From positions 124,001 through 188,000 of the IMG/VR virus record IMGVR_UViG_3300047157_000197: 64,000 nt of DNA, one strand, 5' to 3'. The notes beneath the pieces are model-generated. The model saw only the letters and a program-made list of their open reading frames with translations, searched no databases and was not told the DNA's origin. The position numbers and the translations under genes are program-made. How positions within the stretch are numbered: position 1 is the stretch's first letter; each line of letters opens with the position of its first letter. Shown here piece by piece: positions 10,404 through 64,000 of this stretch.

Positions 10404-13400
10404 ATGGCAGTTTATACATTAAAATTTAGAAGAGGTACGACAATACCTTCATTAGTAGAATCAGAACCGTTCTTTAAAACAGATAGTGATACCTTACATA
10501 TAGGAGATGGGTCATCAAGTATTACTTTAGTAAAACTTGGTTCGAATACTGGTGACATTAATTTTACTGGCGATATCACTGCATCAAATATATCAGTTAC
10601 CAATGACTTAACAATTGGTGGTAATATTATTTTAGGAAACGAAATTCAAGATAATATAACAGTATCAGGACAATTTGATTCTGATTTAATCCCATCTGCA
10701 TCAGCACTTTACGATATAGGTTCTAGCACAAAAAAATGGAAAAAGATTTTTGCGGTTTCTGCATCATTTGATAATTTATCATTAGATGGAACAGGAGTTT
10801 TATCAGGTTCAGACCAATTAACAGGTTCTTTTTTAGAAATAGGTGGTGATAATGTATTTAGTGGGTCATCACAAGTAAATGCAGATTCAATTACAAACTT
10901 TGATTCAAATGTAAAAGCAAAATTAGATACTGAAACAGTAATTAGTGGTTCATCACAAGTTTCTTATGTAGGACTTTCAAACATACCAAGTAATATTGTA
11001 TCAGGTTCATCACAAGTTTCTTATGTAGGACTTTCAAACATACCAAGTGGCATCGTTAGTGGTTCATCACAAATAACAATTACCGAATCTCAAATTTCGG
11101 ATTTATCACATACAGATATAAGTTCACTAAACACTTATACTGGTTCAAACAATACAACCCAATCAATACAAAATTCTAGATTAGACCAACTTTCAACTGA
11201 AACTGGTTCTATTACTACTGAACAAGGAATACAAGATTCAAGATTAGACCAACTTTCAACTGAAACAGGTTCTATCACATCAGAACAATCAGTTCAAGAC
11301 CAACGATTAGGTGCTATTGAAGCAGATAGTGGTTCTTATTTAAAAACTGTTGATATTTCAACTGATACAAATTTAGCTGTAAGTGATACTTCACAAGTTG
11401 ATATGATTTTAACTGGTGATACTCTATCAGCAAACTTAAAGGGTGGTGTTGTATCTGGTTCAATCCAAATATTAGGTGGAAGTACAATTCTTTCATCATC
11501 AAATGAAAACTTTAATGGATTCTCATCTTCAATAGATAGTAGATTAGATACAATTGAAGGACCTCTTTCTACATCAATAGATAGTAGATTAGATTCATTA
11601 GAATCTGATACACATACACATTCAAACAAATCCACACTTGATGGAATTAATCAAGGATTATCAACATCGGATAATGTAACTTTTGCAGATGGAGATTTTA
11701 CAGGTGATGTTCAAGTAACTGGTAATTTAACAGTATTAGGTTCTGCAGTTGAAATTTCTTCAACAGAATTAAGTATTGAAGATAAATTAATTACAGTTGC
11801 AAGTGGTTCTGCAGATTCTGCAGCATCAGATGGTGCTGGTATTGAAATAGCAGGAGCAAATAAATCATTAAAATGGGACCATAACACAACTTCTTTCGTA
11901 TTAGATGCAAAAGTAAGTTCATCAGTAGGATTTAAAGGAGATGGTTCAGAATTAACTGGAGTAACTGCAGCATCTGTTGGTTATTCAAACATTACATCAA
12001 TACCAAGTGGTATTGTAAGTGGTTCATCTCAAATAGTATATAATAGTGTTTCATCAATACCAAGTGGTATTGTAAGTGGTTCATCGCAAGTAAATGCTGA
12101 TTCAATTACAAACTTTGATGAAAATGTAAAACAGAAAATGACTGATGAGGTTGCTCATAGTGGTTCATTCTTAGGAACTGCAACAACTACTCATTTAGAT
12201 GAGGGTGGTAATCTTTATTGGACAGAAACAAGATTTAGTGAATCACTTGATGATAGAGGAGTAATTAGTGGTTCCTCTCAAACATTAGAAATATTAAATT
12301 CTTTAAATTCATATACATCTTCAAACGATACAATAAATACAACTCAGAATACAAGATTAGACCAACTTTCAACTGAAACTGGTTCTATTACTACTGAACA
12401 ATCAGTTCAAGACCAAAGATTATCAGCAATTGAAGCAGATAGTGGTTCTTATTTAAAAACTGTTGATATATCGAGTGATACAAACTTAGCAGTATCAGAT
12501 AGTGCGAATATAGATATGATTTTAACCGATGATACTCTATCAGCAAACTTAAAAGGTGGTGTTGTATCTGGTTCTGAACAACTAAGTAGTACTTTCCTAT
12601 CAAAACTTGGAGATAATGTGTTAAGTAGTTCTGCATTTAGTTCTCCATCACAAGGAACGATTCGAGCAACAATTAATGGAGTAAATTCTGATGTAGATAG
12701 TGGATTACAAATAACAGATTCACCATCGTTCAATGCATTATCATTAAGTTCACTTTCAGAAATAGCTGGTAGTCAATTTAGTGCTTTATTTGTAAGTTCA
12801 TCAAACCTAATAGGTAAACGAGATTTAGGTACAAGTGCTTTTTTACATTATTCAAATTCTATTGATGATGGTAACTCACAAGTAATTGGTACTGCACAGG
12901 CAGTTAAAAATTATGTAGATGCTCAATTTATAGAAGCCGGTGCAGGTGATATTACAGAAGTAGTTGCAGGTAATGGTTTAAGTGGAGGAGCACAGACTGG
13001 TTCTGCAACTCTTACAATAGATACAGGTTCAGCTCACTTCTTAGGTGGAGTTTCAGCAGCTGGAGCACCTACAGGAACAGTTTCAGGTTCTCAACAAGTA
13101 ATTGACCATTTACCAACTGGTACTGTTAGTGGTTCATCGCAAATAACAATAACAGAATCACAAATAAGTGATTTAGACCATTATACTGATTCAGATGTAA
13201 AACTTAAATTAGATGCAGATGGAGTAATTAGTGGTTCATCTCAACTTTATAGTGATTTAGATTTACGATATAATAACGAACTTGGAGAAGGTATAATTAG
13301 TGGTTCATCACAAGTTGATGTAACTGCAACAACTAATTATTCTTCAATAAATCAATATTCTGATTCAAAGGTAAAACTTAAATTAGATGCAGATGGTGTA

Positions 13401-37615: not shown

Positions 37616-38368
37616 ATGAGTTATTTATCAGCTGCAGAAAAACAACAATTACAATTCGATTGGAGATATAGAGGAGTATCTATTTTAAATTTACTAACAG
37701 AATCCGAAACTGATGCTATTTCAAGTGAGTTAGAAAGAATTCGAGTTAAACGGCAGGAAAACGATGTAAATGGAGAGTGGGGAGATTACGACCCTTATAT
37801 GTACCCACATAAAGAATCCAAAGTTCTTGATGGATTAATGAAACACCCTAAAATAATAGAAGCTTGTGAATTTTTAATGGATTCTAAAATATTAGGTGTT
37901 CAAACTTGGGCATACTTTAAACCACCTGGTCAATTAGGTAGAGATATGCACCAAAACATATTTTACACACAATGTAAAACTAATGAAATAATAAACGTTT
38001 CAGTTGCTCTTGATAATGCAGACCCTCAGAATGGTTCTGTTTGGTATTTAGAAGGTTCTCATCGTTTAGGTAAGTTACCTATTGCAATAGATGAAGAAAG
38101 AGTAGGTTCAAACCCCAAAAATTGGAGAAGTGAAAGAGGTAAAGCATGTGTATTACCAACTGACCATAATTTTCCACATATAGATGGGTATCTTAGAAAA
38201 GGACAAGTTGCTTTATTACATTCAAATGTAATACATGGTTCAGAAAAAAATACATCTGATAGATTCCGAAAAGCATTCTTAACTGGTTACATAAAAGAGG
38301 GAGCTAAGTTTGCAGCTGGTGCACAAATGAATAGAAAACCAATTGATGTTGGTTCTGCAAAACTTTAA
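37616..38368 (+). CDS. Phytanoyl-CoA dioxygenase (PhyH)-family 2OG-Fe(II) oxygenase with HQN variant motif
   Basis: FKPPG...HQN, VALDNADPQNGSVWYLEGSH, HSNVIHGS..N.SDRFR. Confidence 0.8.
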   Translation: MSYLSAAEKQQLQFDWRYRGVSILNLLTESETDAISSELERIRVKRQENDVNGEWGDYDPYMYPHKESKVLDGLMKHPKIIEACEFLMDSKILGVQTWAYFKPPGQLGRDMHQNIFYTQCKTNEIINVSVALDNADPQNGSVWYLEGSHRLGKLPIAIDEERVGSNPKNWRSERGKACVLPTDHNFPHIDGYLRKGQVALLHSNVIHGSEKNTSDRFRKAFLTGYIKEGAKFAAGAQMNRKPIDVGSAKL

Positions 38369-38440
38369 TGACCCTTATTTAGAATTAATATAAATTAAAA
38401 AATAATTGACTTTTTATTAGGTTTTCTCATACTTTTTTCG

Positions 38441-38467
38441 TATATTTACTATGTAAATAATTAATAA
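38441..38467 (+). promoter_or_regulatory. Conserved 27-bp early-type promoter element, copy 1
   Basis: TATATTTACTATGTAAATAATTAATAA, identical at 47448 and 48197. Confidence 0.7.
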
Positions 38468-38483
38468 CACTAAAAGATAAAAC

Positions 38484-39086
38484 ATGAGTAAATTAAAAAA
38501 GTTAAAATTTTCAATCAACAAAAACGAATTCACATTACCTCTTGACTCTTATAGAGAACAAACTTGGGGTGGTTCTCTTGAGAAGTATATCCATATGAGT
38601 GCAAAGAACTGTGCTTCTATAATCAAACAATTTGTTAAAAAGAATTATCCTGAACTAAAAGTATGGGCTGGTTCAGATACATATAGTGGTGGTTCTTCTA
38701 CCAGAGTAAGTGTTTGTAACAAAGATGGTTCGGAAGTAGATTATGAAACTTTCAAAGAAATATCTAAATGGAAACATATCTTACAAGGTGGTAACTTCAA
38801 TGGTATGGAAGACATCTACGAATATAGAGAAGATAAATTATGTACTGATAATGGTATGGAATTGAAATACTTCCCTTCTTATATCTTTATTGATAACAAA
38901 CCACAATGGGGTTCTGTTGAATATTGGTTAAATCAGTATCAAGAATACAAAGATAATATCAACAATCCTAATTACTCTAAACAAAGAGAAATTATGAATG
39001 AAAAATACAATGGTTCGTTCTTAGAAATGAATAAAACTTATATGACTAAAAAAGAATATGAAAGATGTTCTTTAGTATTATCTTAA
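38484..39086 (+). CDS. LPD29-like (large polyvalent protein-associated domain) early protein
   Basis: A.IIKQFVKKNYP...YSGGSS.RV...GGNFNGMEDIYEY pattern. Confidence 0.55.
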   Translation: MSKLKKLKFSINKNEFTLPLDSYREQTWGGSLEKYIHMSAKNCASIIKQFVKKNYPELKVWAGSDTYSGGSSTRVSVCNKDGSEVDYETFKEISKWKHILQGGNFNGMEDIYEYREDKLCTDNGMELKYFPSYIFIDNKPQWGSVEYWLNQYQEYKDNINNPNYSKQREIMNEKYNGSFLEMNKTYMTKKEYERCSLVLS

Positions 39087-39104
39087 AACTTAAAACTATA
39101 AATT

Positions 39105-39404
39105 ATGATGAATTGTACAGTAAAAGTAATGGCTCAGTATTTCGAAAATTATTCAGATACTAATACACCTTATTGGAAACCAAAAGGTGGACAGGAATTT
39201 CAAATTGTAATTGATTCAGATACTATATTGTATTCTGATGAGTTAAAGAGTCATCTTACAACCTTAGTAGCTGCTCAATCTAATGAACATCATAAGTATG
39301 AGTACATCGAACATGATGTTGAGTTTATTAAACCAATAGTATTGGAAAGTAAGGAGTTGGAGAGTTTAATTCAAACTGAATATGAAAAATGGAATCTGCC
39401 TTAA
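39105..39404 (+). CDS. Hypothetical protein
   Basis: 99-aa ORF; QYFENY...PYWKPKGGQEF, a motif seen in small phage proteins. Confidence 0.55.
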   Translation: MMNCTVKVMAQYFENYSDTNTPYWKPKGGQEFQIVIDSDTILYSDELKSHLTTLVAAQSNEHHKYEYIEHDVEFIKPIVLESKELESLIQTEYEKWNLP

Positions 39405-41398
39405 GAGTATTTGAAGAAATCCAAAAACTTTCAAATCCCTCTAACAAAAAATTAACAGATGTTGATATAATAAAGTTAGATAGGGATTCTGATGTTATAT
39501 TTGTATTGTTACCTGAGTGGGCTCCAAATCTACCTCCTTATAATATAGCAAGATTATCATCGATAATAAATCAAGCTGGTTATAAATCATCATGTCTTGA
39601 TTTAAACATTGAAACTTATCAAGAATCAAAGAAATGGAAAAAAGAATTGGGAATTGACCCATATAATCCAAATAATCTAAATAAGTGGGCAATAAGTGAA
39701 TATGAAAAATATCTGGCACCAACTATAAATCCATTTTTAGATAAATGGATTGAAAAAATAGTAGAAATAAACCCAAAAGTACTAGGGTTTACTCTGTATT
39801 TTTGTAACTCAGGTCCTGTAGATTATGTAGTAAAAAAATTAAGAAAAAGATTACCAAACTCAACTTTTTTTGCTGGTGGACCTGATTTATCACAAATTAA
39901 AGATAAAATCAAAAATGGTGAAATGTACTGTGATGATAACGATACTCCTTATTTTGATTATGGTATTCTTGGAGAATCTGAAATTATATTATTAGATGTA
40001 CTTGAAGAAATAGAACAAGGTGTTGAGCATAAAGGAATGAAAATTCTTACTCAACCTATTAAACAAAGAATTAATCTAAATAACTTTCCATTACCAAATT
40101 ATGAAAACTTTGATTTTTCTAAATATAAAATATCAGATGGAGCATTAACAGAACTAAGTAGAGGTTGTACTGCAAAATGTACATTTTGTTCAGAAACACA
40201 TTTTTGGGAATATAGACAAAGAAATCATACTTCGGTTTTAGATGAAATACAATATCTTTATGATAAAGGAGTACGAATAATATGGTTTGTTGATTCATTA
40301 GTAAATGGAAATCTAAAAGAATTAAAAGAATTTGCACAAGGAGTTATTGATAGAGAATTGGATATAAAATGGCAAGGATATGCAAGATGTGATGGTAGAA
40401 TGGATTATGAGTATTTAAAATTACTTAAAGATTCTGGTTGTCATTCATTATCCTTTGGTGCTGAATCTGCTAGTGATAAAGTTTTAAAAGATATAAACAA
40501 AAGAGTTACTAACTCTGAAATGGAACAAAACTTTAAAGATTGTAATAAATTAGGAATTCATATATTTTCAACATGGATTACATCATTTCCAACAGAAGAT
40601 ACTGAAGATTTTATAGATACTCTTGTTTTTTTAAATAGAAACACAGTAGATTCTATTTTTTTAACACCAGGATTTCAACTTACAGATGATTCAATAGTTG
40701 GCCAAAACTTTGAAAAATTTGGATTAGCACCTTTTAGTTATAATGGTGGTTGGATTAAAGATGATTATTCCTACACAAAACCACATATATTAACAAGAGC
40801 AAAACTATTTGATATATTTGCTAAAGAATGTACAGATATAATTACATGGGATAGACCATTACTTTCAAAAATGTATAATATCTCTTTTAATAATAAATTA
40901 AATAAAAAAATAGATTATTATAGAACTGATATTAATGTATTTAAAAAAGATAATAATAACTTTAAAAATAATTTGTTACTTGAGCCTTTTTATGTATTTC
41001 ACTTAATGTGGAAAATAAAAGGAGGTTTTGAAATAAATTTAAAATTTGATAAAGATATAGATTACCAAGAATATGGAAATGTATTAGAAACAAATTACTG
41101 GTCAGATTTTTATTTTAAAATAGATGATAGTGGTAATTGGGAAACAAAAATAAAATCTAAATTTGAACAAGTACCAAATGCATTTAACTTTATTGATTAT
41201 TCTCAGAGAAAATCTCCCACAATAGAAAGAGCCAGAGTTCACGCAAAACCAAAATGGAAAGATGGCAGTAGAACTGTTGCTGAAATTAAAGAAGGTTTAA
41301 AAACTGAAAATTACTTAAATAAAACAAAAGATTTTACATTTAAGTTTGATTGGGAAGGTAGTGGATATTGGGGAGAAAAAAAGAAAAACTTATTTTAA
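39389..41398 (+). CDS. B12-binding-domain radical SAM protein
   Basis: SRGCTAKCTFC (CxxxCxxC), N-terminal cobalamin-binding-like region (FAGGPD, GESE), FGAESAS. Confidence 0.85.
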   Translation: MESALRVFEEIQKLSNPSNKKLTDVDIIKLDRDSDVIFVLLPEWAPNLPPYNIARLSSIINQAGYKSSCLDLNIETYQESKKWKKELGIDPYNPNNLNKWAISEYEKYLAPTINPFLDKWIEKIVEINPKVLGFTLYFCNSGPVDYVVKKLRKRLPNSTFFAGGPDLSQIKDKIKNGEMYCDDNDTPYFDYGILGESEIILLDVLEEIEQGVEHKGMKILTQPIKQRINLNNFPLPNYENFDFSKYKISDGALTELSRGCTAKCTFCSETHFWEYRQRNHTSVLDEIQYLYDKGVRIIWFVDSLVNGNLKELKEFAQGVIDRELDIKWQGYARCDGRMDYEYLKLLKDSGCHSLSFGAESASDKVLKDINKRVTNSEMEQNFKDCNKLGIHIFSTWITSFPTEDTEDFIDTLVFLNRNTVDSIFLTPGFQLTDDSIVGQNFEKFGLAPFSYNGGWIKDDYSYTKPHILTRAKLFDIFAKECTDIITWDRPLLSKMYNISFNNKLNKKIDYYRTDINVFKKDNNNFKNNLLLEPFYVFHLMWKIKGGFEINLKFDKDIDYQEYGNVLETNYWSDFYFKIDDSGNWETKIKSKFEQVPNAFNFIDYSQRKSPTIERARVHAKPKWKDGSRTVAEIKEGLKTENYLNKTKDFTFKFDWEGSGYWGEKKKNLF

Positions 41399-49059: not shown

Positions 49060-49854
49060 ATGCCAGAAATATCCGAAGTACGACTTACATCTGAGTGGAT
49101 TACTCAAAAAAATAAAAGGAGAACAATTACAGAAGTAGAATATCTTTCCTCTAATAAACTAAAAATGGTAGAGGAAATTGATGTAATAGGAAAAACTTTA
49201 TCCGCAACTAGTAGAGGAAAAGAATTAAGACTTGAATTCGATTTTGAACCAGTTGTTATTACATTAGGTATGAGTGGTGGATTTAAAAACTACAAAGAAC
49301 GAAGTGATGATTCAGATAAACATTGGAAACATTCTCATATCAGATTTAAGATGTCAGATGGTGATTGGTTTACTTGGTCTGATATTCGTAGATTTGGTAA
49401 ATCACTTGGTGATACTTGGGGAACGAAACGAGGACCAGATATTTTTGATGAAGAAGAAGAATTTAGAAAGAACATTGTAAATAATATAGAACATAGAGAT
49501 TTTAATAAACCTGCACATGAAGTTTTAATGAACCAACAATGGTTTAATGGAATTGGAAACTATCTTAGAGCAGAGATTCTTGGTAAGTGGGATGTAAATC
49601 CTTTTCAACCAATGAGAAATATTATAAATACACCATTTTTAGACCATTTAATAGAACAAGTACATTGGTCATATCGATTAGGTGGTGGACAATTATATAC
49701 TTGGATGAATGAAAATGAATCTGCAATTGATTCCAATTTAACTTGGAATGATTGGATGCAATTTTATGGTAAACAAGAATCAATGAAAGATAAACAAAAA
49801 AGAACCTTTTGGTTTAATAAAAAATATTCAAAAAATTTGGATATAACAAAATAA
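49060..49854 (+). CDS. Fpg/Nei-family DNA glycosylase/AP lyase, NEIL1-like (zinc-less finger)
   Basis: N-terminal MPE, RGKEL, LGMSG, DIRRFG, H2TH FNGIGNYLRAEIL; Cys-free C-terminal DKQKRTFWF. Confidence 0.9.
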   Translation: MPEISEVRLTSEWITQKNKRRTITEVEYLSSNKLKMVEEIDVIGKTLSATSRGKELRLEFDFEPVVITLGMSGGFKNYKERSDDSDKHWKHSHIRFKMSDGDWFTWSDIRRFGKSLGDTWGTKRGPDIFDEEEEFRKNIVNNIEHRDFNKPAHEVLMNQQWFNGIGNYLRAEILGKWDVNPFQPMRNIINTPFLDHLIEQVHWSYRLGGGQLYTWMNENESAIDSNLTWNDWMQFYGKQESMKDKQKRTFWFNKKYSKNLDITK

Positions 49855-49869
49855 TTTTGTATATTAGTA
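49835..49869 (+). repeat. 35-bp direct repeat, left (promoter-like)
   Basis: ATTTGGATATAACAAAATAATTTTGTATATTAGTA; 33/35 identical to 51813-51847. Confidence 0.75.
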
Positions 49870-49928
49870 GCTTCAAATGTGAAAGTTTTACATTAATTAC
49901 TCCAAATTTAAAAAAAAATACAAATAAA

Positions 49929-49960
49929 TTTGGAATTGTAAAAATAATTTCGTATATTTG
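49929..49960 (+). promoter_or_regulatory. Bacteroidetes-type promoter
   Basis: TTTG(49929)-N20-TATATTTG(49953). Confidence 0.75.
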
Positions 49961-49979
49961 TATAAATAAATTAAGAAAA

Positions 49980-51707
49980 TTGAGATTTAACAATCTAAAC
50001 GCCCTAGCAGAAGCAAAGTACGCAACGGCCGTAGGAAAGTTGGACAACCCTACACAACAGAAGGTCCAGTCATTTATTAACGAACAAATCGAAATCGAAA
50101 TGAAGTCGATGAGTGACGTGTTATCTGCAACACAACAACAAAATCAGAAACTACAATTCAATCCATTAAAGTTATGGTTTGAAGGTATAACCAACATTCC
50201 ACTAGGAGTGACCGATATCTACTTCGATATTGAGAAGGTTAAGAACAAGGGATATGAAATCCACATCAGACAAGTTGGACCAGGAACAACACTTGAGACA
50301 ATTAACGGTAATTTACTTGACTCCAAAACGGTTGAATCACAAGTATTCATTCGTAAGGATAACAAATCAGGCTCAATCTATGGGTCTGGTATTGGTACAC
50401 AGTCCCAATACACAAGTAAACTTATCTACAAAGTTAAAACCAAAGGAATGGATTCATTCCATTGTTGGGATGTATTAACCGGTAAAACTTGGTTTGATGA
50501 TAAATTATCTCACGAGAGTGGGGTAATTATCGAGATGTTTGTACCATACTCTCAAAAAATGGTTAGTTATGAAAGATTTATCGATGATTTAAGATGGATG
50601 ATTTCTTTCTACGATAACAAAAACCTTGTTGGGAACAATAGTAGAACCTATCATATTGAAGCTCAAGGTTTCGATACTGGTGGTAATGATAGATTATCCT
50701 TACCAATTCACCCAACTGCAACCAATTGGGTACAACCAGATGGTAAGATTACAAAGATTCCATCATACACACACCTTACTTTAAATAAGAAAGTTTTTAA
50801 GGAACTTCCTATAATTGTTCCACATGATGATGGTGACAAGACAGTTTTACTTACAAACTTTAAGTTTGGTAAAAGAGCTGATAATTACAGAAAATCAGCT
50901 GGAGGTGAACAATGGAAAATCCCATCAAAGATAACTGGTGATATTCCTCAACTAATTGTTTACTATAAAGATTCTAAACAAATAGCGTTTACATTACCAC
51001 TTAGAGGAAACTCTGGTTTAACATCCCTTAACAATGTTACTTTAGAATGTGAAATAGCAAAGGATGATTTAAGACCCTTCTTTACTTCAACTGATAAGTT
51101 CGGTGATATTCAAGGAGTACTTAAAGCAACTTTATTCAATGAGTTAAGACAGTATCTGTTAGATAGATATCCAGATAATGATTTACTAGAAAGAGCAGTT
51201 CAACTATGGTTGTATGCTGTAATCGTTAATGATTTTGGTGGTAAGAATAACGCTAACAATCTTAGAAATTATTATGGTTGGGGATTCTTAAATAATATGA
51301 CTCCACTCAAAAGAACCAAATTCGTAATAATGGAATATGATTCAGATGAAGGTAGACAGGATTTTAGAATCTTTCTCGTTGGTGATACCAATAATAAGAT
51401 TACTAAGTTTACTAAGAGTTGTATTATTGAAGTAAAGAGAAGTGATTTCAATAGAAGAGATACTAATCAATCAATGGGTTACATTACAACGACAGTTAAC
51501 GCAACACAAATTGTTGGAGTTTCATTAAACATCAAAACAAAGAATGATAAATTATTTAAAGAATTCTTTGCTAAAGCGAATGGAACAGGTCAGTTAACAA
51601 GTGATATCAAGTATGATTTGATGGAAGTTGCTGATTGGGGATTCGAGGACGATGTTAAAGATTCGTTTACTTCTGAGGCTTTGGTTGAAAAAAACAGTAA
51701 GAAATAA
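49980..51707 (+). CDS. Divergent GHKL (MORC/Hsp90-like) ATPase fused to a C-terminal PD-(D/E)XK nuclease domain
   Basis: LWFEGITN (N box), IRQVGPG (G1), SGSIYGSGIG (G2), SGVIIEM (G3); C-terminal RQDFRIF...IIEVKR....DTNQSMGY. Start probably TTG 49980 (after the promoter) or ATG 50100. Confidence 0.55.
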   Translation: MRFNNLNALAEAKYATAVGKLDNPTQQKVQSFINEQIEIEMKSMSDVLSATQQQNQKLQFNPLKLWFEGITNIPLGVTDIYFDIEKVKNKGYEIHIRQVGPGTTLETINGNLLDSKTVESQVFIRKDNKSGSIYGSGIGTQSQYTSKLIYKVKTKGMDSFHCWDVLTGKTWFDDKLSHESGVIIEMFVPYSQKMVSYERFIDDLRWMISFYDNKNLVGNNSRTYHIEAQGFDTGGNDRLSLPIHPTATNWVQPDGKITKIPSYTHLTLNKKVFKELPIIVPHDDGDKTVLLTNFKFGKRADNYRKSAGGEQWKIPSKITGDIPQLIVYYKDSKQIAFTLPLRGNSGLTSLNNVTLECEIAKDDLRPFFTSTDKFGDIQGVLKATLFNELRQYLLDRYPDNDLLERAVQLWLYAVIVNDFGGKNNANNLRNYYGWGFLNNMTPLKRTKFVIMEYDSDEGRQDFRIFLVGDTNNKITKFTKSCIIEVKRSDFNRRDTNQSMGYITTTVNATQIVGVSLNIKTKNDKLFKEFFAKANGTGQLTSDIKYDLMEVADWGFEDDVKDSFTSEALVEKNSKK

Positions 51708-51864: not shown

Positions 51865-52293
51865 ATGAATAAGATAATAAAAAAAGAAAGTAAAAACCAC
51901 AAATTTAACCCAATTAAAGTAGAACCCCAATATGATGAGGTTATTGCATATGATAATCCAAAAGTGGTTGAGGAAATGGAAAAACAATGGCCTGAAATGA
52001 CGGCAGAGTTTAAAAGAATTATGTTTACACAATATGAATTATTTTGTTTAAAACAATCTAACTATGGACCAGATAATATTTCGGTTGGTAGTAATTTAGA
52101 AACAGAACAAGAAAAGAAAGTATCTCTTACAGGTCTTTGGTTTAGAATGAATGATAAAATTCAAAGATTAAAACAATTAGTTGTATTAGGTAAACAAGAT
52201 AATATAGGTGAATCATGTGAAGATACCTTCCAAGATTTATCAGTATATGGAATCATTGCTCAACTCGTTTCAAGTGGAAAATGGGCTAAGTAA
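51865..52293 (+). CDS. Nucleotide-modification-associated domain 1 (DUF1599/Nmad1-like) protein
   Basis: KQSNYGPDNI...RMNDKIQRLKQL...ESCEDTFQDLSVYGII. Confidence 0.7.
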   Translation: MNKIIKKESKNHKFNPIKVEPQYDEVIAYDNPKVVEEMEKQWPEMTAEFKRIMFTQYELFCLKQSNYGPDNISVGSNLETEQEKKVSLTGLWFRMNDKIQRLKQLVVLGKQDNIGESCEDTFQDLSVYGIIAQLVSSGKWAK

Positions 52294-57248: not shown

Positions 57249-57419
57249 ATGGCAAATTCACAAGAATTATTTGAACAGATTAAAGATTTATTCGTTCAAT
57301 TCGAAACAGAACACAATGGTGGTTCTAAAGCAGCTAAATCAAGAGCAAGAAAAGCAATTGGTGAAGTTAAAAAATTAGTAACAGATTATAGAAAAGCTTC
57401 AGTAGAAGAATCAAAATAA
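57249..57419 (+). CDS. Histone H1-like protein (Hc1 family, Bacteroidetes type), 56 aa, not in the ORF track
   Basis: MANSQELFEQIKDLFVQFETEHNGGSKAAKSRARKAIGEVKKLVTDYRKASVEESK, containing the G.KAA..RARK...L....RK.S signature. Confidence 0.75.
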   Translation: MANSQELFEQIKDLFVQFETEHNGGSKAAKSRARKAIGEVKKLVTDYRKASVEESK

Positions 57420-57429
57420 TTAAATTACT

Positions 57430-58425
57430 ATGAGCAAAATTTTCCAAGAAAGAATTCCATTTAAACCATTTGAATATCCAATCTACTATACAGAAGGTTG
57501 GTTAAAACAGGCACAGGCATTTTGGTTACATACTGAAATACCGATGCAGGGTGATGTAAAAGATTGGAATGAACGTTTAACCCCAGCTGAGAAAAACTTA
57601 GTGGGGAATATTCTACTTGGTTTTGCTCAAACTGAATGTGCAGTTTCTGATTATTGGACTAATATGGTTACCGATTGGTTTCCTAAACACGAGATAAGAC
57701 AGATGGCGATGATGTTTGGTTCACAAGAAACAATTCATGCTACTGCATATTCATACTTAAATGAAACATTAGGATTAGATGACTTCTCAGCGTTTTTGCA
57801 CGAACCTGCAGTTGCTGAGAAGTTTGAACTCCTTACTGCTACTACTAACAATTGGACACATGAAGATTTGGCAACAAATCCAAAAGCAAGACAAGAAGTT
57901 GGTAGAAGTTTAGCAATCTTCTCTGCATTTAGTGAGGGAGTATCCCTATACTCTTCATTTGCAGTACTCTACTCATTCCAAATGAGAAATCTACTAAAAG
58001 GTATCGGACAACAAATGAAATGGTCTGTAAGAGATGAATCTCTACATTCTAAGATGGGTTGTCAATTGTTCAGACATATGTGTGAAGAATATCCTACATT
58101 ATTAGATGAGTGTAAAGAATCAATAGAAGAGGCTTCAAGATTAATCGTTCAGTTAGAAACAAACTTTATTGATATGATATTTGAACAAGGTGATTTAGAA
58201 AACCTTGAGAAAGAAGATTTAAAAGAGTTTATTAAAGCAAGAACAAATACAAAATTACAAGAATTGGGCTATAACCCTATTCACGAATTCGATAAACCGA
58301 AGGCTGAAAAGCTAGAATGGTTTTATCATCTTACAGGTGGACTCACTCATACTGATTTTTTTGCTGTTAGACCTACTGATTATAGTAAGGCTAATGAAGG
58401 TGAAGATTGGGGTGATTTATTTTAA
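57430..58425 (+). CDS. nrdB: Ribonucleotide reductase class I beta subunit
   Basis: PFEYP, AQTE, ETIHATAY, EGVSLYSSF, RDESLH, TDFF. Confidence 0.95.
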   Translation: MSKIFQERIPFKPFEYPIYYTEGWLKQAQAFWLHTEIPMQGDVKDWNERLTPAEKNLVGNILLGFAQTECAVSDYWTNMVTDWFPKHEIRQMAMMFGSQETIHATAYSYLNETLGLDDFSAFLHEPAVAEKFELLTATTNNWTHEDLATNPKARQEVGRSLAIFSAFSEGVSLYSSFAVLYSFQMRNLLKGIGQQMKWSVRDESLHSKMGCQLFRHMCEEYPTLLDECKESIEEASRLIVQLETNFIDMIFEQGDLENLEKEDLKEFIKARTNTKLQELGYNPIHEFDKPKAEKLEWFYHLTGGLTHTDFFAVRPTDYSKANEGEDWGDLF

Positions 58426-58429
58426 ATAA

Positions 58430-59020
58430 ATGAAAAACAAAAAGGTTACAATAACAGATACGAGAATATCGTATCAAGAAGATGATTCCAAAATTGTAAT
58501 GGATGTAATATCCAAAGAACTGATGGAATTTTATTCTAATATAGTTACACAAAATGGTGGAAAGGTATTAGATGTTGGATTTGGTTTAGGGTATAGTGCT
58601 AATGCAATCTATAATAAGGTTGGTAATTATCATTGTATTGAATCAAACCCACAAATCTTTAAGGAGGCTCAGAAGTGGGCTGAAGATAAAGAGGATGTTC
58701 ATTTATATTTTGGTAATTGGGTAGATGTAATCCCAACTTTAGATGTTAAGTTTGATGGTATCTTTATGGATACTTACGATGACCCTAACTATTCTAAGTT
58801 TGAAGATTATTCAAAACTAATTTCAAATGAAAATTGTGTATTATCAGTTTTTAGTTATTTTGCATTAAGAGATACTAAAGATTTACATTCACATTATTTT
58901 GAAATTAAATCAAAATATAGAGAAAGCTATCCAAAAATAATTGAAAAGGGACACACTTGTAATTGGAGTTATTTTATAGATAGTAAATTCCAAAAAAAGA
59001 AATTAAATGAAACCATTTGA
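58430..59020 (+). CDS. Class I SAM-dependent methyltransferase, GAMT/RMT2-like
   Basis: GGKVLDVGFGLGYSA, IESNPQ, GNWVDV, FDGIFMDTY. Confidence 0.8.
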   Translation: MKNKKVTITDTRISYQEDDSKIVMDVISKELMEFYSNIVTQNGGKVLDVGFGLGYSANAIYNKVGNYHCIESNPQIFKEAQKWAEDKEDVHLYFGNWVDVIPTLDVKFDGIFMDTYDDPNYSKFEDYSKLISNENCVLSVFSYFALRDTKDLHSHYFEIKSKYRESYPKIIEKGHTCNWSYFIDSKFQKKKLNETI

Positions 59021-59429
59021 TTATTTAAACACAAGTGTTAAATCATATATAAGAGTAAGTAAAATACATGGAATTGGTTTATTTACTTTGGTTGATATAA
59101 AAAAAGGAGAACATATTTTTCCACTATGGAAAGGAAAAACTGATTGGTATAAAATAAAGTTTAGTAAAGCTAAGTTATTACCAAAAGAAGTATTATCATA
59201 CATACTTCGTTCTTATGGTTCAAAAATAGAAAATGATAATTCAGACATCAATTTTAGATTGGTAAAGGATACTAACTTTTTATTTTCAAACCCATTGTGT
59301 TTACTTAATACCGAATATGAAAATGGTAATGTAGATACTAACGGTATAGCAATAAAGGATATAAAAATAAATAAAGAGATAACAGCAACCTATACAGGCG
59401 AAGGTTACTCACAAGTAAAATTAATATAA
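59007..59429 (+). CDS. SET-domain protein (degenerate NHS motif)
   Basis: SKIHGIGLFTLVDIKKGEHI ... LLNTEYENGNV ... IAIKDIKINKEITATY. Confidence 0.7.
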   Translation: MKPFDYLNTSVKSYIRVSKIHGIGLFTLVDIKKGEHIFPLWKGKTDWYKIKFSKAKLLPKEVLSYILRSYGSKIENDNSDINFRLVKDTNFLFSNPLCLLNTEYENGNVDTNGIAIKDIKINKEITATYTGEGYSQVKLI

Positions 59430-59430
59430 A

Positions 59431-61215
59431 ATGGCAGTAAAAAATTACGGTGACGAATTAGGTTGGGAACTTGATGTAGATTTCCCATCATGGGCAAATA
59501 CAGAGATATACGTTAAAACAATATCAAATGGATATTTGTTACCAGGTGAAAAACCAAAGGATGCCTATTGGAGAGTTGCATCAAGAGTTGCAATGAGATT
59601 AGAAAAACCTCAGTTAGCAACCAAATTCTTTGATTACATTTGGAAAGGTTGGTTAAACTTAGCAACACCAGTTCTTTCAAATACTGGTACTGATAGAGGA
59701 TTACCTATATCTTGTTTTGGTATTGATGTTGCCGATTCTATATATGATATTGGTTCAAAGAACTTAGAACTAATGTTACTTGCAAAACATGGTGGTGGTG
59801 TTGGAATTGGTGTAAATCAAATTAGACCAGCAGGAGCTACTATTACAGGTAATGGAACATCAGATGGTGTTGTACCATTTTGTAAAATATACGATTCTAC
59901 AATACTTGCAACAAACCAAGGTTCGGTAAGAAGAGGAGCAGCATCTGTTAACCTTAATATTGAACACGAAGATTTCGAAGAATGGTTAGAAATCAGAGAA
60001 CCTAAAGGAGATGTAAATAGACAATCACTTAATCTACACCAATGTGCAGTTGTAGGTGATAAGTTTATGAGAAAACTTGAACAAGGAGAACCTGATGCGA
60101 GAAGAAAGTGGGGAAAATTACTACAAAAAAGAAAAGCAACTGGTGAACCATACATCATGTACAAAGGGAATATCAATAAAGCTAATCCTGAAATGTACAA
60201 AAAAAATGGATTAAAAGTTCATATGACAAACATATGTTCTGAAATTACTTTACATACAGATGAGAACCATTCATTTGTTTGTTGTTTATCATCAGTAAAT
60301 CTTGCTAAGTACAACGAGTGGAGAGATACTGATTTAGTTTATACAGCAACTTGGTTCTTAGATGGAGTACTTTCTGAATTTATTCAAAAGGCTAAAAACA
60401 TGAAAGGGTTTGAACATTCTGTTGCATCTGCTGAAAAAGGTAGAGCATTAGGATTGGGAGTTTTAGGATGGCACACTTACCTACAACAAAATGGTATTCC
60501 ATTTGAAGGTATGGAGGCTCAATTTGAAACTCGTAAGATTTTTTCTCAGTTAAAGATAGAATCAGAAAGAGCATCAAGAGATTTAGCATCAGAATATGGT
60601 GAACCTCTATGGTGTAGAGAAAGTGGATTTAGAAATACTCACTTAAGAGCAGTTGCTCCAACAGTTAGTAACTCTAAATTAGCTGGAAATGTATCTGCTG
60701 GTATTGAACCATGGGCGGCGAATGTATTCACCGAACAAACTGCAAAAGGAACTTTCATTAGAAAGAACAATGAGTTAGTAAAGGTTTTAAGAAAAGCAGG
60801 TATCAATAACAAAGAAACTTGGGATAAGATAATGGAAGATGGTGGTTCTGTTCAAGGTATTAAAGAACTTGATAAGTGGTGTTACTTAGCTGGTAAAATG
60901 GTACTTTGTAATGATGTAGAAAATGGAGATAGAGATAAGATTTATCCTGTTAAAGATGTTTTCAGAACTTTCAAAGAAATAAATCAAATGGATTTGGTTA
61001 AACAAGCTGGTGTAAGACAACAGTATATTGACCAAGGAGTTTCATTAAACTTAGCATTCCCTTCCATTGCATCACCGAAATGGATTAATCAAGTAACTAT
61101 GGAAGCTTGGAAACAAGGAATTAAAACGTTGTATTATATGAGAACTGAATCAGTTCTTAGAGGTGATATAGCAACACGAGCAGTTGATCCCGATTGTGTG
61201 GCATGTGATGGTTAG
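59431..61215 (+). CDS. nrdA: Ribonucleotide reductase class I alpha subunit (no ATP cone)
   Basis: ATPVLSN, ISCF, NQGSVRRGA, TNICSEI, APTVSNS, KTLYY, C-terminal CVAC. Confidence 0.95.
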   Translation: MAVKNYGDELGWELDVDFPSWANTEIYVKTISNGYLLPGEKPKDAYWRVASRVAMRLEKPQLATKFFDYIWKGWLNLATPVLSNTGTDRGLPISCFGIDVADSIYDIGSKNLELMLLAKHGGGVGIGVNQIRPAGATITGNGTSDGVVPFCKIYDSTILATNQGSVRRGAASVNLNIEHEDFEEWLEIREPKGDVNRQSLNLHQCAVVGDKFMRKLEQGEPDARRKWGKLLQKRKATGEPYIMYKGNINKANPEMYKKNGLKVHMTNICSEITLHTDENHSFVCCLSSVNLAKYNEWRDTDLVYTATWFLDGVLSEFIQKAKNMKGFEHSVASAEKGRALGLGVLGWHTYLQQNGIPFEGMEAQFETRKIFSQLKIESERASRDLASEYGEPLWCRESGFRNTHLRAVAPTVSNSKLAGNVSAGIEPWAANVFTEQTAKGTFIRKNNELVKVLRKAGINNKETWDKIMEDGGSVQGIKELDKWCYLAGKMVLCNDVENGDRDKIYPVKDVFRTFKEINQMDLVKQAGVRQQYIDQGVSLNLAFPSIASPKWINQVTMEAWKQGIKTLYYMRTESVLRGDIATRAVDPDCVACDG

Positions 61216-62357: not shown

Positions 62358-62558
62358 ATGTCAAAAACCGCATGGTTTTTTAGTAATAGGTTACGAGGGG
62401 AATCTCATCCCAGGTCAAAATTAACATCTGAACAAGTAATCCAAATAAGAGAACTTTATTCTAAAGGATTTTCTACTAATGTAATTGCCCGAAACTTCAA
62501 AGTATCGGCTTGGAATGTAGAAGAAATTTGTAAAAGAAGAACCTGGACTCATTTATAA
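62358..62558 (+). CDS. Stand-alone helix-turn-helix DNA-binding protein (resembles the C-terminal domain of HNH endonucleases)
   Basis: RGESHPRSKLTSEQVIQIRELY...IARNFKVS...I..RRTW.HL. Confidence 0.65.
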   Translation: MSKTAWFFSNRLRGESHPRSKLTSEQVIQIRELYSKGFSTNVIARNFKVSAWNVEEICKRRTWTHL

Positions 62559-62571
62559 ACAAAATTAAAAT

Positions 62572-63270
62572 ATGACAGTTATAGAAGCAACTTCACCTGG
62601 TGATGCTTGGGTAAAAGTATCAAAACATTTATTAGAACATGGTGTAAGAGTAGGTAATCTTACAGAAGAACTTAATGTGATTACCGAAATCACAGAATTT
62701 AAATCAGATGATTGGTTTGATGGACACTTCAGAGAAATTATGGGAGATGATAGAATTGATTTCGCTAAAACAGTAACCTTTCTTAAACCAGAACAAAAGA
62801 AATCAGATAACCCATTCTTTGATGAGGGAGAGGGATTAGATTATAAATTTATTAAAGACCATTACCATCAATCCTATTGGGGTAGAATGGTATCTTGGAG
62901 AGGTGAATTTAATCAAATAGAAAATGTAATCAAAATTCTATCAACTGGTAAAGCAGTAAAACGATGTGAACTTATTATTTTTGACCCTAAGAAAGATGCA
63001 AGGAATCCATATTCACAACCTTGTATGGTTATGATTGATTTAAAACCAAGAAATGGTAAATTATATCTAACATCAGTACTTCGTTCAAATAGAGTATCTA
63101 AAAGTGGTTATGCAGATTACACAGCATTAACCGAAATGGGACATTTCCTTGCTGAACAAAGTGGATTAGAATTAGGAAAAGTAACTACCCTCGCTTGTTC
63201 GTGTCATATTGGTGATATGGATAATGAAAAAAAGAAAACAAACAAGTTATTAGAAGTATTAAATAGATAG
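62572..63270 (+). CDS. Thymidylate synthase / dCMP hydroxymethylase-like protein (atypical)
   Basis: QSYWGR, QPCM (catalytic Cys), LRSNRVSKSGYADY, SCHIG. Confidence 0.7.
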   Translation: MTVIEATSPGDAWVKVSKHLLEHGVRVGNLTEELNVITEITEFKSDDWFDGHFREIMGDDRIDFAKTVTFLKPEQKKSDNPFFDEGEGLDYKFIKDHYHQSYWGRMVSWRGEFNQIENVIKILSTGKAVKRCELIIFDPKKDARNPYSQPCMVMIDLKPRNGKLYLTSVLRSNRVSKSGYADYTALTEMGHFLAEQSGLELGKVTTLACSCHIGDMDNEKKKTNKLLEVLNR

Positions 63271-63271
63271 T

Positions 63272-64000
63272 ATGTGTGGAATCGTGGCAACAATTGGATA
63301 TTCTCGTAATGAGGTAGACGATATGTTAGAAGTTATTTCTCATCGAGGTAAAGATAATAGAGGAATAGAAGAATTTGATTATAATGGTAAAAAAGTATGC
63401 TTAGGACATAATCGTTTATCTATTAATGATATATCTCCTTTAGGCAACCAACCAATGAGTTTTGAAAATACTCACTTAATTGTAAATGGTGAGATTTGGA
63501 ACTACCCACAACTTAGAAAAGAATATGAAGAACGAGGATATATTTTTAAATCATCATCAGATTCGGAAATTATATTATACCTTTATAAAGAAAATGAATT
63601 ACAGAGATTAGATGGAATGTTTTCCTTTGTTATATATGATGATAACAAATTAATATTATCTCGTGATTGGGTTGGTAAAATACCTCTTTACATCTATAAT
63701 ACAAACAAATATATTGTTGCTAGTGAATTAAAATCTATACTTGGATATAATGAAACATCAGATATTAGATTCGTTCCAAAAAACTCATTAGTAGAGATTG
63801 ATTTAGATACTGATGAATTTAAAGTAACTAGCGATTTTTATTTTAAATGGTCATCGGATGTAACAAAACCAAAATCAAGTAAAGAAGTTGGTGAAACCAC
63901 ATTTAAATTATTAGAAAGAGCAGTAGATAAACGATTATTATCAGATGTTCCAATTGCAACATCATTAAGTGGAGGTATTGATTCTGCTATTATAACTTAC
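63272..64000 (+). CDS. Asparagine synthetase (glutamine-hydrolysing)-like amidotransferase; 3'-truncated by the window
   Basis: MCGI, HRGKD, LGHNRLSINDIS..GNQPM, VNGEIWNY, SRDWVGKIPLY, SLSGGIDSA. Confidence 0.9.
   Translation, partial: MCGIVATIGYSRNEVDDMLEVISHRGKDNRGIEEFDYNGKKVCLGHNRLSINDISPLGNQPMSFENTHLIVNGEIWNYPQLRKEYEERGYIFKSSSDSEIILYLYKENELQRLDGMFSFVIYDDNKLILSRDWVGKIPLYIYNTNKYIVASELKSILGYNETSDIRFVPKNSLVEIDLDTDEFKVTSDFYFKWSSDVTKPKSSKEVGETTFKLLERAVDKRLLSDVPIATSLSGGIDSAIITY

Follow-up and report, generated by a model that had tools for sequence, protein, structure and literature searches.

Why does an uncultured aquatic phage, which already has its own thymidylate synthase, encode an atypical homologue of this enzyme immediately in front of a glutamine amidotransferase? 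This question was addressed in a window of 64,000 nucleotides (positions 124,001 to 188,000 of the IMG/VR virus record IMGVR_UViG_3300047157_000197; coordinates are those of the window unless the genome is indicated). As detailed below, the two genes are the core of a tightly packed cassette shared by many uncultured aquatic phages, which most likely builds an amino-acid-decorated cytosine for phage DNA; the product has not been identified. The features discussed inside the window are:
62572..63270, + strand: TS-like protein of 232 aa, an undescribed clade of the thymidylate synthase (TS) fold.
63272..64000, + strand: first 243 codons of an AsnB-like glutamine amidotransferase/PP-loop synthetase, 501 aa in the genome (genome 187272-188777, ending at window-equivalent 64777).
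51865..52293, + strand: ORF of 142 aa with a sub-threshold DUF1599/Nmad1 match, probably not part of the cassette.

The TS-like protein and its active-site residues

The first-pass annotation, made from the sequence alone, had described a TS homologue keeping the catalytic Pro-Cys but lacking the usual RSxD and HxY motifs, followed after 1 nt by an amidotransferase gene, and these observations were confirmed. The protein reads SQPCMVMIDL around the catalytic cysteine, LRSNRVSKSGYADYTAL in the RSxD region and ACSCHIGD in the HxY region. It matches the Pfam family Thymidylat_synt at 28.6 bits (cut-off 24.3), but only over residues 100-215, i.e. the C-terminal half, and it also matches PHROG thymidylate synthase families; against the NCBIfam equivalogs the scores were 79.7 bits (cut-off 174.6) and 17.5 bits (cut-off 327). 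The key positions are: C151 in the Pro-Cys motif, R171-S172, D182 at the position of Asn177 (uracil selection), R174 at the position of the folate-contacting Asp169, H212 conserved, and Tyr209 replaced by Gly. These peculiarities belong to the family and are not noise: in 15 homologues down to 32% identity, P150-C151, R171 and H212 are invariant or nearly so, D182 is at least 90% conserved, position 174 is Arg or Ala, and the Tyr209 position varies. The residue three before the Cys (the Leu143 position) is Ser and varies in the family (Ser, Arg, Gly, Lys, Leu). More distant TS-like and archaeal homologues keep, in the same columns, RSxD, mostly Asn, and often HxY. Published work ties N177D to the use of dCMP, and changes at Asp169 to a cofactor switch (PMC13326640). 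An alternative hhalign alignment of the family against the ThyA of this genome put a 3-residue gap in the RS...D segment, shifting D182 off Asn177; it was rejected in favour of the ungapped alignment, which is supported by HMMER alignments to AfhB and MilA and by the column pattern of 45 sequences.

The nearest solved structures are two cytosine-nucleotide enzymes, the dCMP 5-hydroxylase AfhB (the top structural match, and the only solved relative aligned over the full length) and the CMP hydroxymethylase MilA, and the protein fails the signature residues of every characterised TS subfamily. One rival reading is that the first step would be a flavin-dependent 5-hydroxylation of dCMP, as in AfhB and RB69 gp48, with the resulting 5-hydroxycytosine as the hook and an amino-acid-derived group, instead of sugars, attached to the 5-oxygen (for example by the PLP enzyme described below acting as a beta-replacement catalyst) and then amidated by the AsnB-like enzyme. 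This reading, which differs from our preferred one only in cofactor and linkage, is favoured by the shared size and short N-terminal half, by the loss of Asp169 and Tyr209 and the Asp at position 177 that AfhB-type enzymes also show, and by the fact that with the PLP enzyme as installer a single carboxylate suffices for AsnB. However, the published diagnostic residue D169N is Arg in this protein and Arg/Ala in the family, the acidic residue at the Leu143 position, L143E, is absent, identity to AfhB is only 17-19%, and the closest characterised relative of the PLP enzyme is a decarboxylase rather than a beta-replacement enzyme. We regard it as unlikely, flavin binding and O2-dependent hydroxylation being suppositions by analogy.

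The TS-like protein is not the thymidylate synthase of the phage: a canonical ThyA (316 bits, all signature motifs, with Asn and Asp in the two diagnostic columns) and a dCMP deaminase lie elsewhere in the genome, and the other five large cassette-bearing genomes examined also encode ThyA or ThyX. A blastn search of the region against 50,697 phage records found nothing, and tblastn of the TS-like protein against cultured phages returned only hits below 30% identity, so there is no cultured model.

The neighbouring genes and their conservation

The TAG stop of the TS-like gene (63268-63270) is followed 1 nt later by the ATG of the AsnB-like gene (63272). The encoded protein begins MCGIV, matches GATase_7, GATase_6 and Asn_synthase, and combines an N-terminal Cys2 glutaminase domain with a PP-loop synthetase domain (SGGIDS, residues 233-238). 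Most of the remaining cassette lies beyond position 64000, where the first-pass annotation could not see it: a PLP enzyme, followed by one or several DNA methyltransferase paralogues (410 aa and 545 aa). The gaps and overlaps between the four genes are +1, −10 and −4 nt.

Conservation of the cassette was examined in 52 related viral loci with at least 3 kb downstream: 35 have the AsnB-like gene beside the TS-like gene, 16 a glutaminase-less PP-loop paralogue, and 1 neither; 46 have the PLP enzyme and 6 a radical SAM (rSAM) enzyme. Of the 33 loci with at least 5 kb on both sides, 32 carry N4-cytosine-type methyltransferase paralogues. The core persists where all the flanking genes differ, and it is also present on a contig binned to an Ignavibacteria MAG. 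Gene fusions were found between the TS-like and rSAM genes, and between the rSAM and N6_N4 methyltransferase genes. The cassette is abundant in seawater and freshwater viromes and is represented in metatranscriptomes; the sequencing runs found are Illumina contigs only, which show presence in RNA libraries but cannot show base modification.

The PLP enzyme is homologous over 97% of its length to phage M6 gp52 (28% identity, E 2e-18; phrog_7093, E 1e-23), and K37, the equivalent of the Schiff-base Lys36 of gp52, and the Gly-rich GSGVT loop are invariant or nearly so. Gp52 is a proven decarboxylase of amino-acid:base conjugates in DNA (PMC8989533); at this identity, the enzyme analysed here may catalyse another PLP reaction, and its decarboxylase activity is inferred from homology. 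Single-sequence searches of the PDB with the PLP enzyme and the 410-aa methyltransferase found nothing, and profile searches gave only weak cysteine synthase/ACC deaminase hits and insignificant methylase/CmoB hits. The methyltransferase model (pLDDT 90) matches AlphaFold DB clusters named cytosine-N4 DNA methyltransferase at TM 0.62-0.68, and SAM-binding motif I (D197-x-x-x-G201-W-G) and the SPPY motif (S276-P-P-Y) are among its invariant residues; cytosine N4 as the target is inferred. A 52-residue similarity between the methyltransferase N-terminus and the rSAM cluster-binding segment, without the cysteines, is too weak to be read as a degenerate rSAM remnant.

These data also bear on the possibility that the adjacency reflects no shared function: the AsnB-like gene would be an auxiliary metabolic gene making asparagine for the infected cell, the TS-like gene a spare or degenerate pyrimidine enzyme, and the methyltransferases ordinary anti-restriction methylases. 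The AsnB-like protein scores 284 bits against the asparagine synthase equivalog TIGR01536 (cut-off 267), aligns with E. coli AsnB (1CT9) at E 2e-58, and keeps the equivalents of Cys2, E348, D351, K376 and R387; moreover, phages often carry orphan methylases and metabolic genes in replication modules. On the other hand, its score against the AsnB equivalog NF006949 is 251 bits (cut-off 499), and Asp384 of the E. coli and human asparagine synthetases, a residue with a role in aspartate binding, is replaced by an invariant Asn (N372). In close relatives whose TS-like gene is 91-93% identical, the AsnB-like gene is replaced at the same position by a 300-aa PP-loop protein, homologous to its synthetase domain (hhalign 98.4%) but only about 13% identical, which makes little sense for an asparagine supply gene. 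Together with the adjacency in 51 of 52 loci (down to 39% identity and in unrelated genome contexts), the tightly coupled start and stop codons and the strong conservation of the TS-like active-site residues, this makes the reading very improbable.

The first-pass annotation had also linked a DUF1599/Nmad1 protein at 51865 to the pathway, a claim that was confirmed only in part. The ORF scores 22.5-23 bits against PF07659, below the cut-off of 25, matches only part of the model, and belongs to phrog_1485, of unknown function. It lies 10 kb away, and its homologues occur only in close relatives, at the syntenic distant position, being absent from divergent cassette-bearing loci; it was consequently rejected as a cassette member.

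A putative cytosine hypermodification pathway

The interpretation given in the first-pass annotation, an amidated or aminated cytosine derivative protecting the genome from host restriction and from the phage's own nucleases, is partly supported. The cytosine type of the TS-fold enzyme, its altered cofactor site and its functional link to the adjacent AsnB-like gene are supported, and a role in DNA hypermodification gains independent support from the gp52 homologue; the proposed product is plausible but unproven, and nothing found bears on protection from the phage's own nucleases.

In our best reading (probability of roughly 0.55), the TS-like gene is the signature enzyme of a translationally coupled cassette, in the order TS-like gene, AsnB-like amidotransferase (or PP-loop paralogue), gp52-like PLP enzyme (or class-B-like rSAM enzyme) and SPPY methyltransferases, constituting an undescribed pathway for a hypermodified cytosine in phage DNA. 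The TS-like enzyme would add Cys151 to C6 of a cytosine nucleotide, with Asp182 reading and protonating the cytosine face, and R171, S172 and K130 holding the phosphate. The activated C5 would then acquire a substituent without the usual folate contact, because Asp169 is gone and that position is unconstrained, and this substituent would be, or become, an amino-acid-type side chain. The PLP enzyme would trim this side chain, by homology as a decarboxylase leaving a primary amine; the AsnB-like or PP-loop enzyme would adenylate a carboxylate on it and convert it to a carboxamide or amide; and the methyltransferases would methylate exocyclic amino groups, probably cytosine N4, on the DNA. The fold, the residue pattern, the conservation of the cassette, the gene fusions, the homologies and the presence of a separate true thymidylate synthase were established by this analysis, while the substrate, the cofactor, the enzymatic activities, the order of the steps, the level at which the first step acts (mononucleotide or DNA) and the final structure are only inferred.

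This reading rests on no chemical data of any kind. If the PLP enzyme is a decarboxylase and the AsnB-like enzyme an amidase, one amino-acid carboxylate cannot serve both, so that the side chain would need two carboxylates, or one of the two assignments is wrong. The methyltransferases could be ordinary orphan methylases that merely travel with the cassette. Searches of the genome for the MazG and dUTPase families detected no dCTPase-type gene, and no nucleotide kinase lies inside the cassette; full replacement of C through the nucleotide pool is therefore unsupported. The phage has a thymidylate-kinase-like gene (L001:12827-13369). A complex prediction of the TS-like dimer plus the AsnB-like protein gave no answer, counting neither for nor against.

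The failure to find a dCTPase or a cassette kinase, the presence of MilA (an enzyme of antibiotic biosynthesis) among the top structural matches, and the loss of Tyr209, which contacts the sugar 3'-OH and whose absence makes a ribo-substrate possible, would also fit a cassette that does not modify phage DNA, but makes a free modified cytosine nucleotide or nucleoside (as in the MilA and BcmA pathways) or modifies RNA, the product being used against the host or against nucleotide-based host defences. We consider this improbable: the characterised relatives of the PLP enzyme act on DNA, DNA amino-methyltransferase paralogues are part of the cassette (in one case fused to the rSAM partner), and in many phages the cassette sits in the replication and nucleotide-metabolism module next to the DNA polymerase.

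A more speculative and rather unlikely possibility is that the TS fold has been recruited a third time, after folate and flavin, to a new co-substrate, forming a bond between cytosine C5 and an amino-acid-derived unit that would come from SAM, from a PLP-bound aminoacrylate, or from the rSAM partner to which the enzyme is sometimes fused. The result would be DNA carrying a diphthamide-like amino/carboxamide side chain on cytosine, possibly also N4-methylated, and the TS-like–rSAM–methyltransferase fusion chain could even mean that the TS-fold enzyme works on DNA rather than on a mononucleotide.

Comparison with known systems

Phage DNA hypermodifications determine sensitivity to restriction enzymes and CRISPR, and supply enzymes for DNA chemistry and sequencing technology; a new base encoded by this cassette would be ecologically widespread. 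All known pathways initiated by TS homologues use folate (methyl, hydroxymethyl) or, since 2025-26, flavin (hydroxyl), and this clade, coupled to an amide-forming enzyme with no assigned role in any DNA modification pathway, fits neither signature. Literature searches for this cassette or for candidate product names found no description.

In the 5-hydroxy-dCMP synthases (phage HY126 AfhB, PDB 9IQU/9IQC; RB69 gp48; DLP3 gp80), beyond the residue differences at positions 169 and 143 described above, the downstream genes are arabinose/UDP-sugar enzymes and glycosyltransferases, instead of an amidotransferase, a PLP or rSAM enzyme and methyltransferases. T4 dCMP hydroxymethylase (gp42) and MilA share the Asp at the Asn177 position, but both keep the folate-binding Asp (RSND, RAND), an acidic residue at the Leu143 position and His-x-Tyr, none of which is kept in the window protein. 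The archaeal-type short thymidylate synthases (TIGR03283; Swiss-Prot 'putative thymidylate synthase' of methanogens) are the best sequence-family match (the 79.7 bits indicated above, far below the equivalog cut-off of 174.6) and the best AlphaFold/Swiss-Prot match (TM 0.71-0.77), and share the short architecture, but keep RSxD and mostly Asn at position 177.

The thymidine hypermodification clusters of phages M6 and ViI (5-HMUDK, aGPT-Pplase2, rSAM isomerase gp53, PLP decarboxylase gp52) share a homologous PLP enzyme, a TS homologue nearby and the combinatorial use of rSAM and PLP tailoring enzymes, and Lee et al. 2021 explicitly listed amidoligase and glutamine-amidotransferase genes in metagenomic clusters as unexplained. 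However, tblastn with M6 gp51, gp53 and gp54 found nothing in the genome or in the cassette loci (no 5-hmdU DNA kinase, aGPT-Pplase or gp53-type rSAM), which rejects membership in the known thymidine pathway; the TS homologue is of cytosine type and not a dUMP hydroxymethylase, and the rSAM partner is class-B/AprD4-like, so the means of installing the side chain must differ. Finally, and by analogy only, without any claim of homology, diphthamide biosynthesis (Dph2 rSAM, Dph5 methyltransferase, Dph6 ATP-dependent amidase) also combines a radical SAM enzyme, methyltransferase(s) and an ATP-pyrophosphatase-type amidating enzyme to build an amino-acid-derived carboxamide side chain on a ring carbon, although the target there is a protein histidine and no TS-fold enzyme is involved.

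A TS-like gene and an amidotransferase gene in a marine phage genome

The window corresponds to bases 124001-188000 of a single 275,970-bp viral contig (30.5% G+C) from a JGI metagenome, and near-identical sequence occurs in many seawater metagenomes. As the genes of interest lie at the very end of the window, the analysis was extended into the genome beyond it (bases 186001-206000, here L001). About 8 kb beyond the window end (L001:10051-12759, genome 196051-198759), the phage encodes a 902-aa SusC-like TonB-dependent outer-membrane receptor (CarboxypepD_reg, Plug and beta-barrel), unusual cargo for a phage which is conserved in close relatives and hints at a Bacteroidota host. The main features examined were the following:

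62572-63270: TS-like protein, 232 aa.
From 1 nt after the stop of the TS-like gene: AsnB-like protein, 501 aa, a class-II glutamine amidotransferase fused to an Asn-synthase-type PP-loop domain.
From 51865: ORF of 142 aa matching DUF1599 only below threshold.

The observation made in the first-pass annotation held for the first two genes: the TS-like ORF carries the motifs described there, and the amidotransferase follows it directly; the third gene, proposed as a DUF1599 protein, remained below the family threshold. Just upstream of this ORF (window 49060-51707) there is an Fpg/Nei-family DNA glycosylase (264 aa) followed by a 616-aa protein with no family match; a base-excision enzyme in a phage suspected of carrying modified bases may be relevant.

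The TS-like protein passes the Pfam thymidylate synthase threshold only narrowly (28.6 against 24.3 bits), and only over its C-terminal half; the best NCBIfam model is the archaeal short TS, at 79.7 bits, far below its cut-off of 174.6. An AlphaFold model built on 45 homologues is confident (pLDDT 93, pTM 0.90). The nearest solved structures are those of AfhB and MilA (a dCMP 5-hydroxylase and a CMP hydroxymethylase). In sequence searches, a family profile found the same two first (E 9e-11 and 7e-9), AfhB aligning over the full length; predicted structures of archaeal "putative thymidylate synthases" also match well (TM 0.71-0.77). In the family alignment P150-C151, R171 and H212 are invariant or nearly so, and S172, K177, G179, Y180 and D182 are at least 90% conserved. 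More distant TS-like homologues keep RSxD, mostly Asn, and often His-x-Tyr in the same columns, whereas this family has Arg or Ala at the Asp169 column, Asp at the Asn177 column and no conserved residue at the Tyr209 column. The RR pair that binds the phosphate from the partner subunit is reduced to a conserved Lys (K130) followed by Arg or Thr.

The roles of these positions were summarised by Lee et al. (PMC13326640): N177D selects dCMP; an acidic residue at Leu143 goes with hydroxymethyl or hydroxyl products; and D169N is diagnostic for flavin-dependent 5-hydroxy-dCMP synthases. The window protein has only the first of these features, and therefore belongs to none of the characterised subfamilies (ThyA, dCMP/CMP hydroxymethylase, 5hodCMP synthase). 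The free variation between Arg and Ala at position 169 suggests that no pterin or flavin is anchored there. An AfhB-like flavin hydroxylase acting as the first step of the pathway is the strongest alternative to the reading given below, but the diagnostic residues are lacking.

The TS-like protein is not the thymidylate synthase of the phage. The genome encodes a canonical ThyA (L003:1483-2388, L003 being another stretch of the same genome; 316 bits) with every signature motif (DRTGTGT, PCH, RSVD...PFN, HLY), and a dCMP deaminase. Of five other large viral genomes bearing the cassette, two have ThyA and three have ThyX in addition to the TS-like gene. Next to the canonical ThyA, a 321-aa ORF (L003:2496-3461, genome about 38169-39134) appears by eye to carry the S-adenosylmethionine synthetase signature (GGGAFSGKD); a phage-encoded MetK-like enzyme would fit the heavy SAM demand of the five radical SAM ORFs of the genome and several methyltransferases. 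The region upstream of the TS-like gene includes ribonucleotide reductase and several small genes:

57249-57419: ORF of 56 aa with a precomputed Pfam hit to Hc1, the chlamydial histone H1-like protein, just upstream of the ribonucleotide reductase beta gene.
57430-58425: ribonucleotide reductase beta.
58430-59429: two small genes wedged between the beta and alpha genes, one a guanidinoacetate-N-methyltransferase-like class I methyltransferase (196 aa), the other a SET-domain protein (140 aa; 22.9 bits against a cut-off of 22.4).
59431-61215: ribonucleotide reductase alpha.
62358-62558: helix-turn-helix protein of 66 aa resembling the C-terminal DNA-binding part of HNH/homing endonucleases.

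The helix-turn-helix gene lies upstream of the TS-like gene, usually immediately upstream. It was found by tblastn in 38 loci, all but two of them close relatives with 70% or more TS-like identity, and is absent from the divergent loci (L060-L073, L008, L009 and L084).

Conservation and composition of the cassette

About 196 clusters of close homologues of the TS-like protein exist in public metagenomes, with roughly a dozen deeper lineages. We retrieved 61 IMG/VR loci, two metagenome contigs and one contig binned to an Ignavibacteria MAG, and mapped their neighbouring genes by tblastn and clustering. Among the 52 loci with at least 3 kb downstream, 35 have the AsnB-like gene, 16 have a roughly 300-aa PP-loop protein without a glutaminase domain, and one has neither; 46 have a 280-aa PLP-fold gene and 6 have a roughly 450-aa radical SAM gene instead (one shorter locus, L042, has both). 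Of the 33 loci with at least 5 kb on both sides, 32 have one to six paralogues of a 400-550-aa methyltransferase-like protein. In the divergent loci L067-L073 every flanking gene differs from those in the window, yet the core order methyltransferase, TS-like, PP-loop, PLP, methyltransferase persists. In the genome of the window the four genes are separated by +1, -10 and -4 nt.

Phages whose TS-like and PLP genes are about 90% identical to those of the window carry the PP-loop protein exactly where AsnB sits here, and the PP-loop family is homologous to the AsnB synthetase domain (hhalign 98.4% probability, 181 columns). Two natural fusions link the components: TS-like with radical SAM (protein P0125), and radical SAM with N6_N4 DNA methylase (locus L061). 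In the contig with the TS-like–radical SAM fusion (L008), the cassette also holds an endonuclease IV/xylose-isomerase-like TIM-barrel protein and an ATP-grasp-like protein (L008:2411-3274 and L008:5908-7092), the latter of which may be an alternative ligase for the side chain. GIY-YIG/NUMOD3 homing-endonuclease genes are inserted inside or beside the cassette in some phages (L062:12190-12813; L064:9233-10000 and 13052-13375), and may help the cassette or its parts to move between genomes.

The AsnB-like protein is a fairly close relative of real asparagine synthetases (E. coli AsnB, E 2e-58) and passes TIGR01536, but not the AsnB equivalog. It keeps the equivalents of E348, D351, K376 and R387, and has an invariant Asn where the E. 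coli and human enzymes have Asp384. The possibility of a plain asparagine-synthetase auxiliary gene lying next to an unrelated TS relic is hard to reconcile with the neighbourhood statistics and the AsnB/PP-loop swap.

The PLP-fold protein has no significant PDB relative by sequence. It matches phrog_7093 (E 1e-23) and, over 97% of its length, gp52 of Pseudomonas phage M6 and its relatives (E 2e-18). gp52 is the experimentally shown PLP-dependent decarboxylase that converts C-alpha-glycinylthymidine in DNA to 5-aminoethyl-dU, with Lys36 as the Schiff-base residue (PMC8989533); the equivalent Lys37 and the phosphate-binding Gly loop are invariant here. The other M6 pathway proteins (5-hmdU DNA kinase, aGPT-Pplase2 and the gp53 rSAM) have no homologue in this genome or in the cassette loci.

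The two methyltransferase-like proteins of this genome (410 and 545 aa) flank the DNA polymerase gene, and carry an intact motif I and an invariant SPPY. The predicted structure (pLDDT 90) matches AlphaFold clusters annotated as cytosine-N4 DNA methyltransferases over almost its whole length. A free-nucleotide or RNA product of the cassette cannot be excluded, but it fits poorly with the gp52 homology and these DNA methyltransferases. Residues 86-135 of the 410-aa protein (L001:3865-4014) belong to a segment 38% identical over 52 residues to the CxxxCxxC cluster-binding segment of the cassette radical SAM enzyme of locus L009, but without the cysteines; this could be a remnant of a fusion like that in L061, or chance. 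The radical SAM partner resembles B12-domain/class-B enzymes and AprD4 only in its core. In the genome of the window, the strongest of the five radical SAM matches (window 40151-40630, genome 164151-164630, inside a 670-aa ORF; 70.9 bits) is only distantly similar (22%) to the cassette-type enzyme of other phages.

Contigs assembled from four seawater RNA libraries match the region exactly, some of them spanning the TS-like/AsnB junction, with a depth that is very uneven along the 6 kb (from about 1 to 78). This fits transcription, although DNA carry-over is not excluded, and Illumina contigs cannot reveal base modification.

Inferred pathway and relation to known systems

What the sequences show is a conserved and tightly coupled cassette whose signature is a cytosine-type TS-fold enzyme that has lost the folate anchor, accompanied in all but one of the 52 loci by a PP-loop enzyme of the amide-forming type, together with a tailoring enzyme homologous to one that works on amino-acid-decorated bases in DNA, amino-group DNA methyltransferases, and a separate normal route to dTMP. 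The chemistry is inferred: Cys151 would add to C6 of a cytosine nucleotide, and the activated C5 would acquire a substituent from a non-folate donor; the substituent would be, or become, an alpha-amino-acid-type chain; the PLP enzyme would remove CO2, and the AsnB-like or PP-loop enzyme would convert a carboxylate to an amide; and N4 would be methylated on DNA. The proposal of the first-pass annotation, that the TS-like protein and the amidotransferase make an amidated or aminated cytosine derivative, was only partly supported, its product remaining an inference.

This scheme contains an internal tension, as a decarboxylase and an amidase cannot both use a single carboxylate. Three resolutions are possible: the side chain has two carboxylates (aspartate- or glutamate-like, or a ring carboxylate plus an amino acid); the PLP enzyme here is the installer, acting by beta-replacement as is typical of its fold; or the two enzymes act on different fractions of sites. 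The first step may act on the mononucleotide, as in every characterised TS homologue, or on DNA, as the fusion chain hints. No dCTPase-type gene was found in searches of the genome for the MazG and dUTPase families, so complete replacement of C is not supported.

No cultured phage has a close homologue of the TS-like protein. PHROG has no family of its own for it, the protein matching only generic thymidylate synthase families, and lists the AsnB-like and PP-loop families as unknown; full-text literature searches found no description of the cassette. Unexplained amidoligase and glutamine-amidotransferase genes were mentioned by Lee et al. 2021 in metagenomic thymidine clusters. We consider the cassette most likely to represent a pyrimidine hypermodification initiated by a TS homologue, a type of pathway already known, but with an initiating enzyme which belongs to none of the characterised TS subfamilies; there is a real chance that its chemistry is new.
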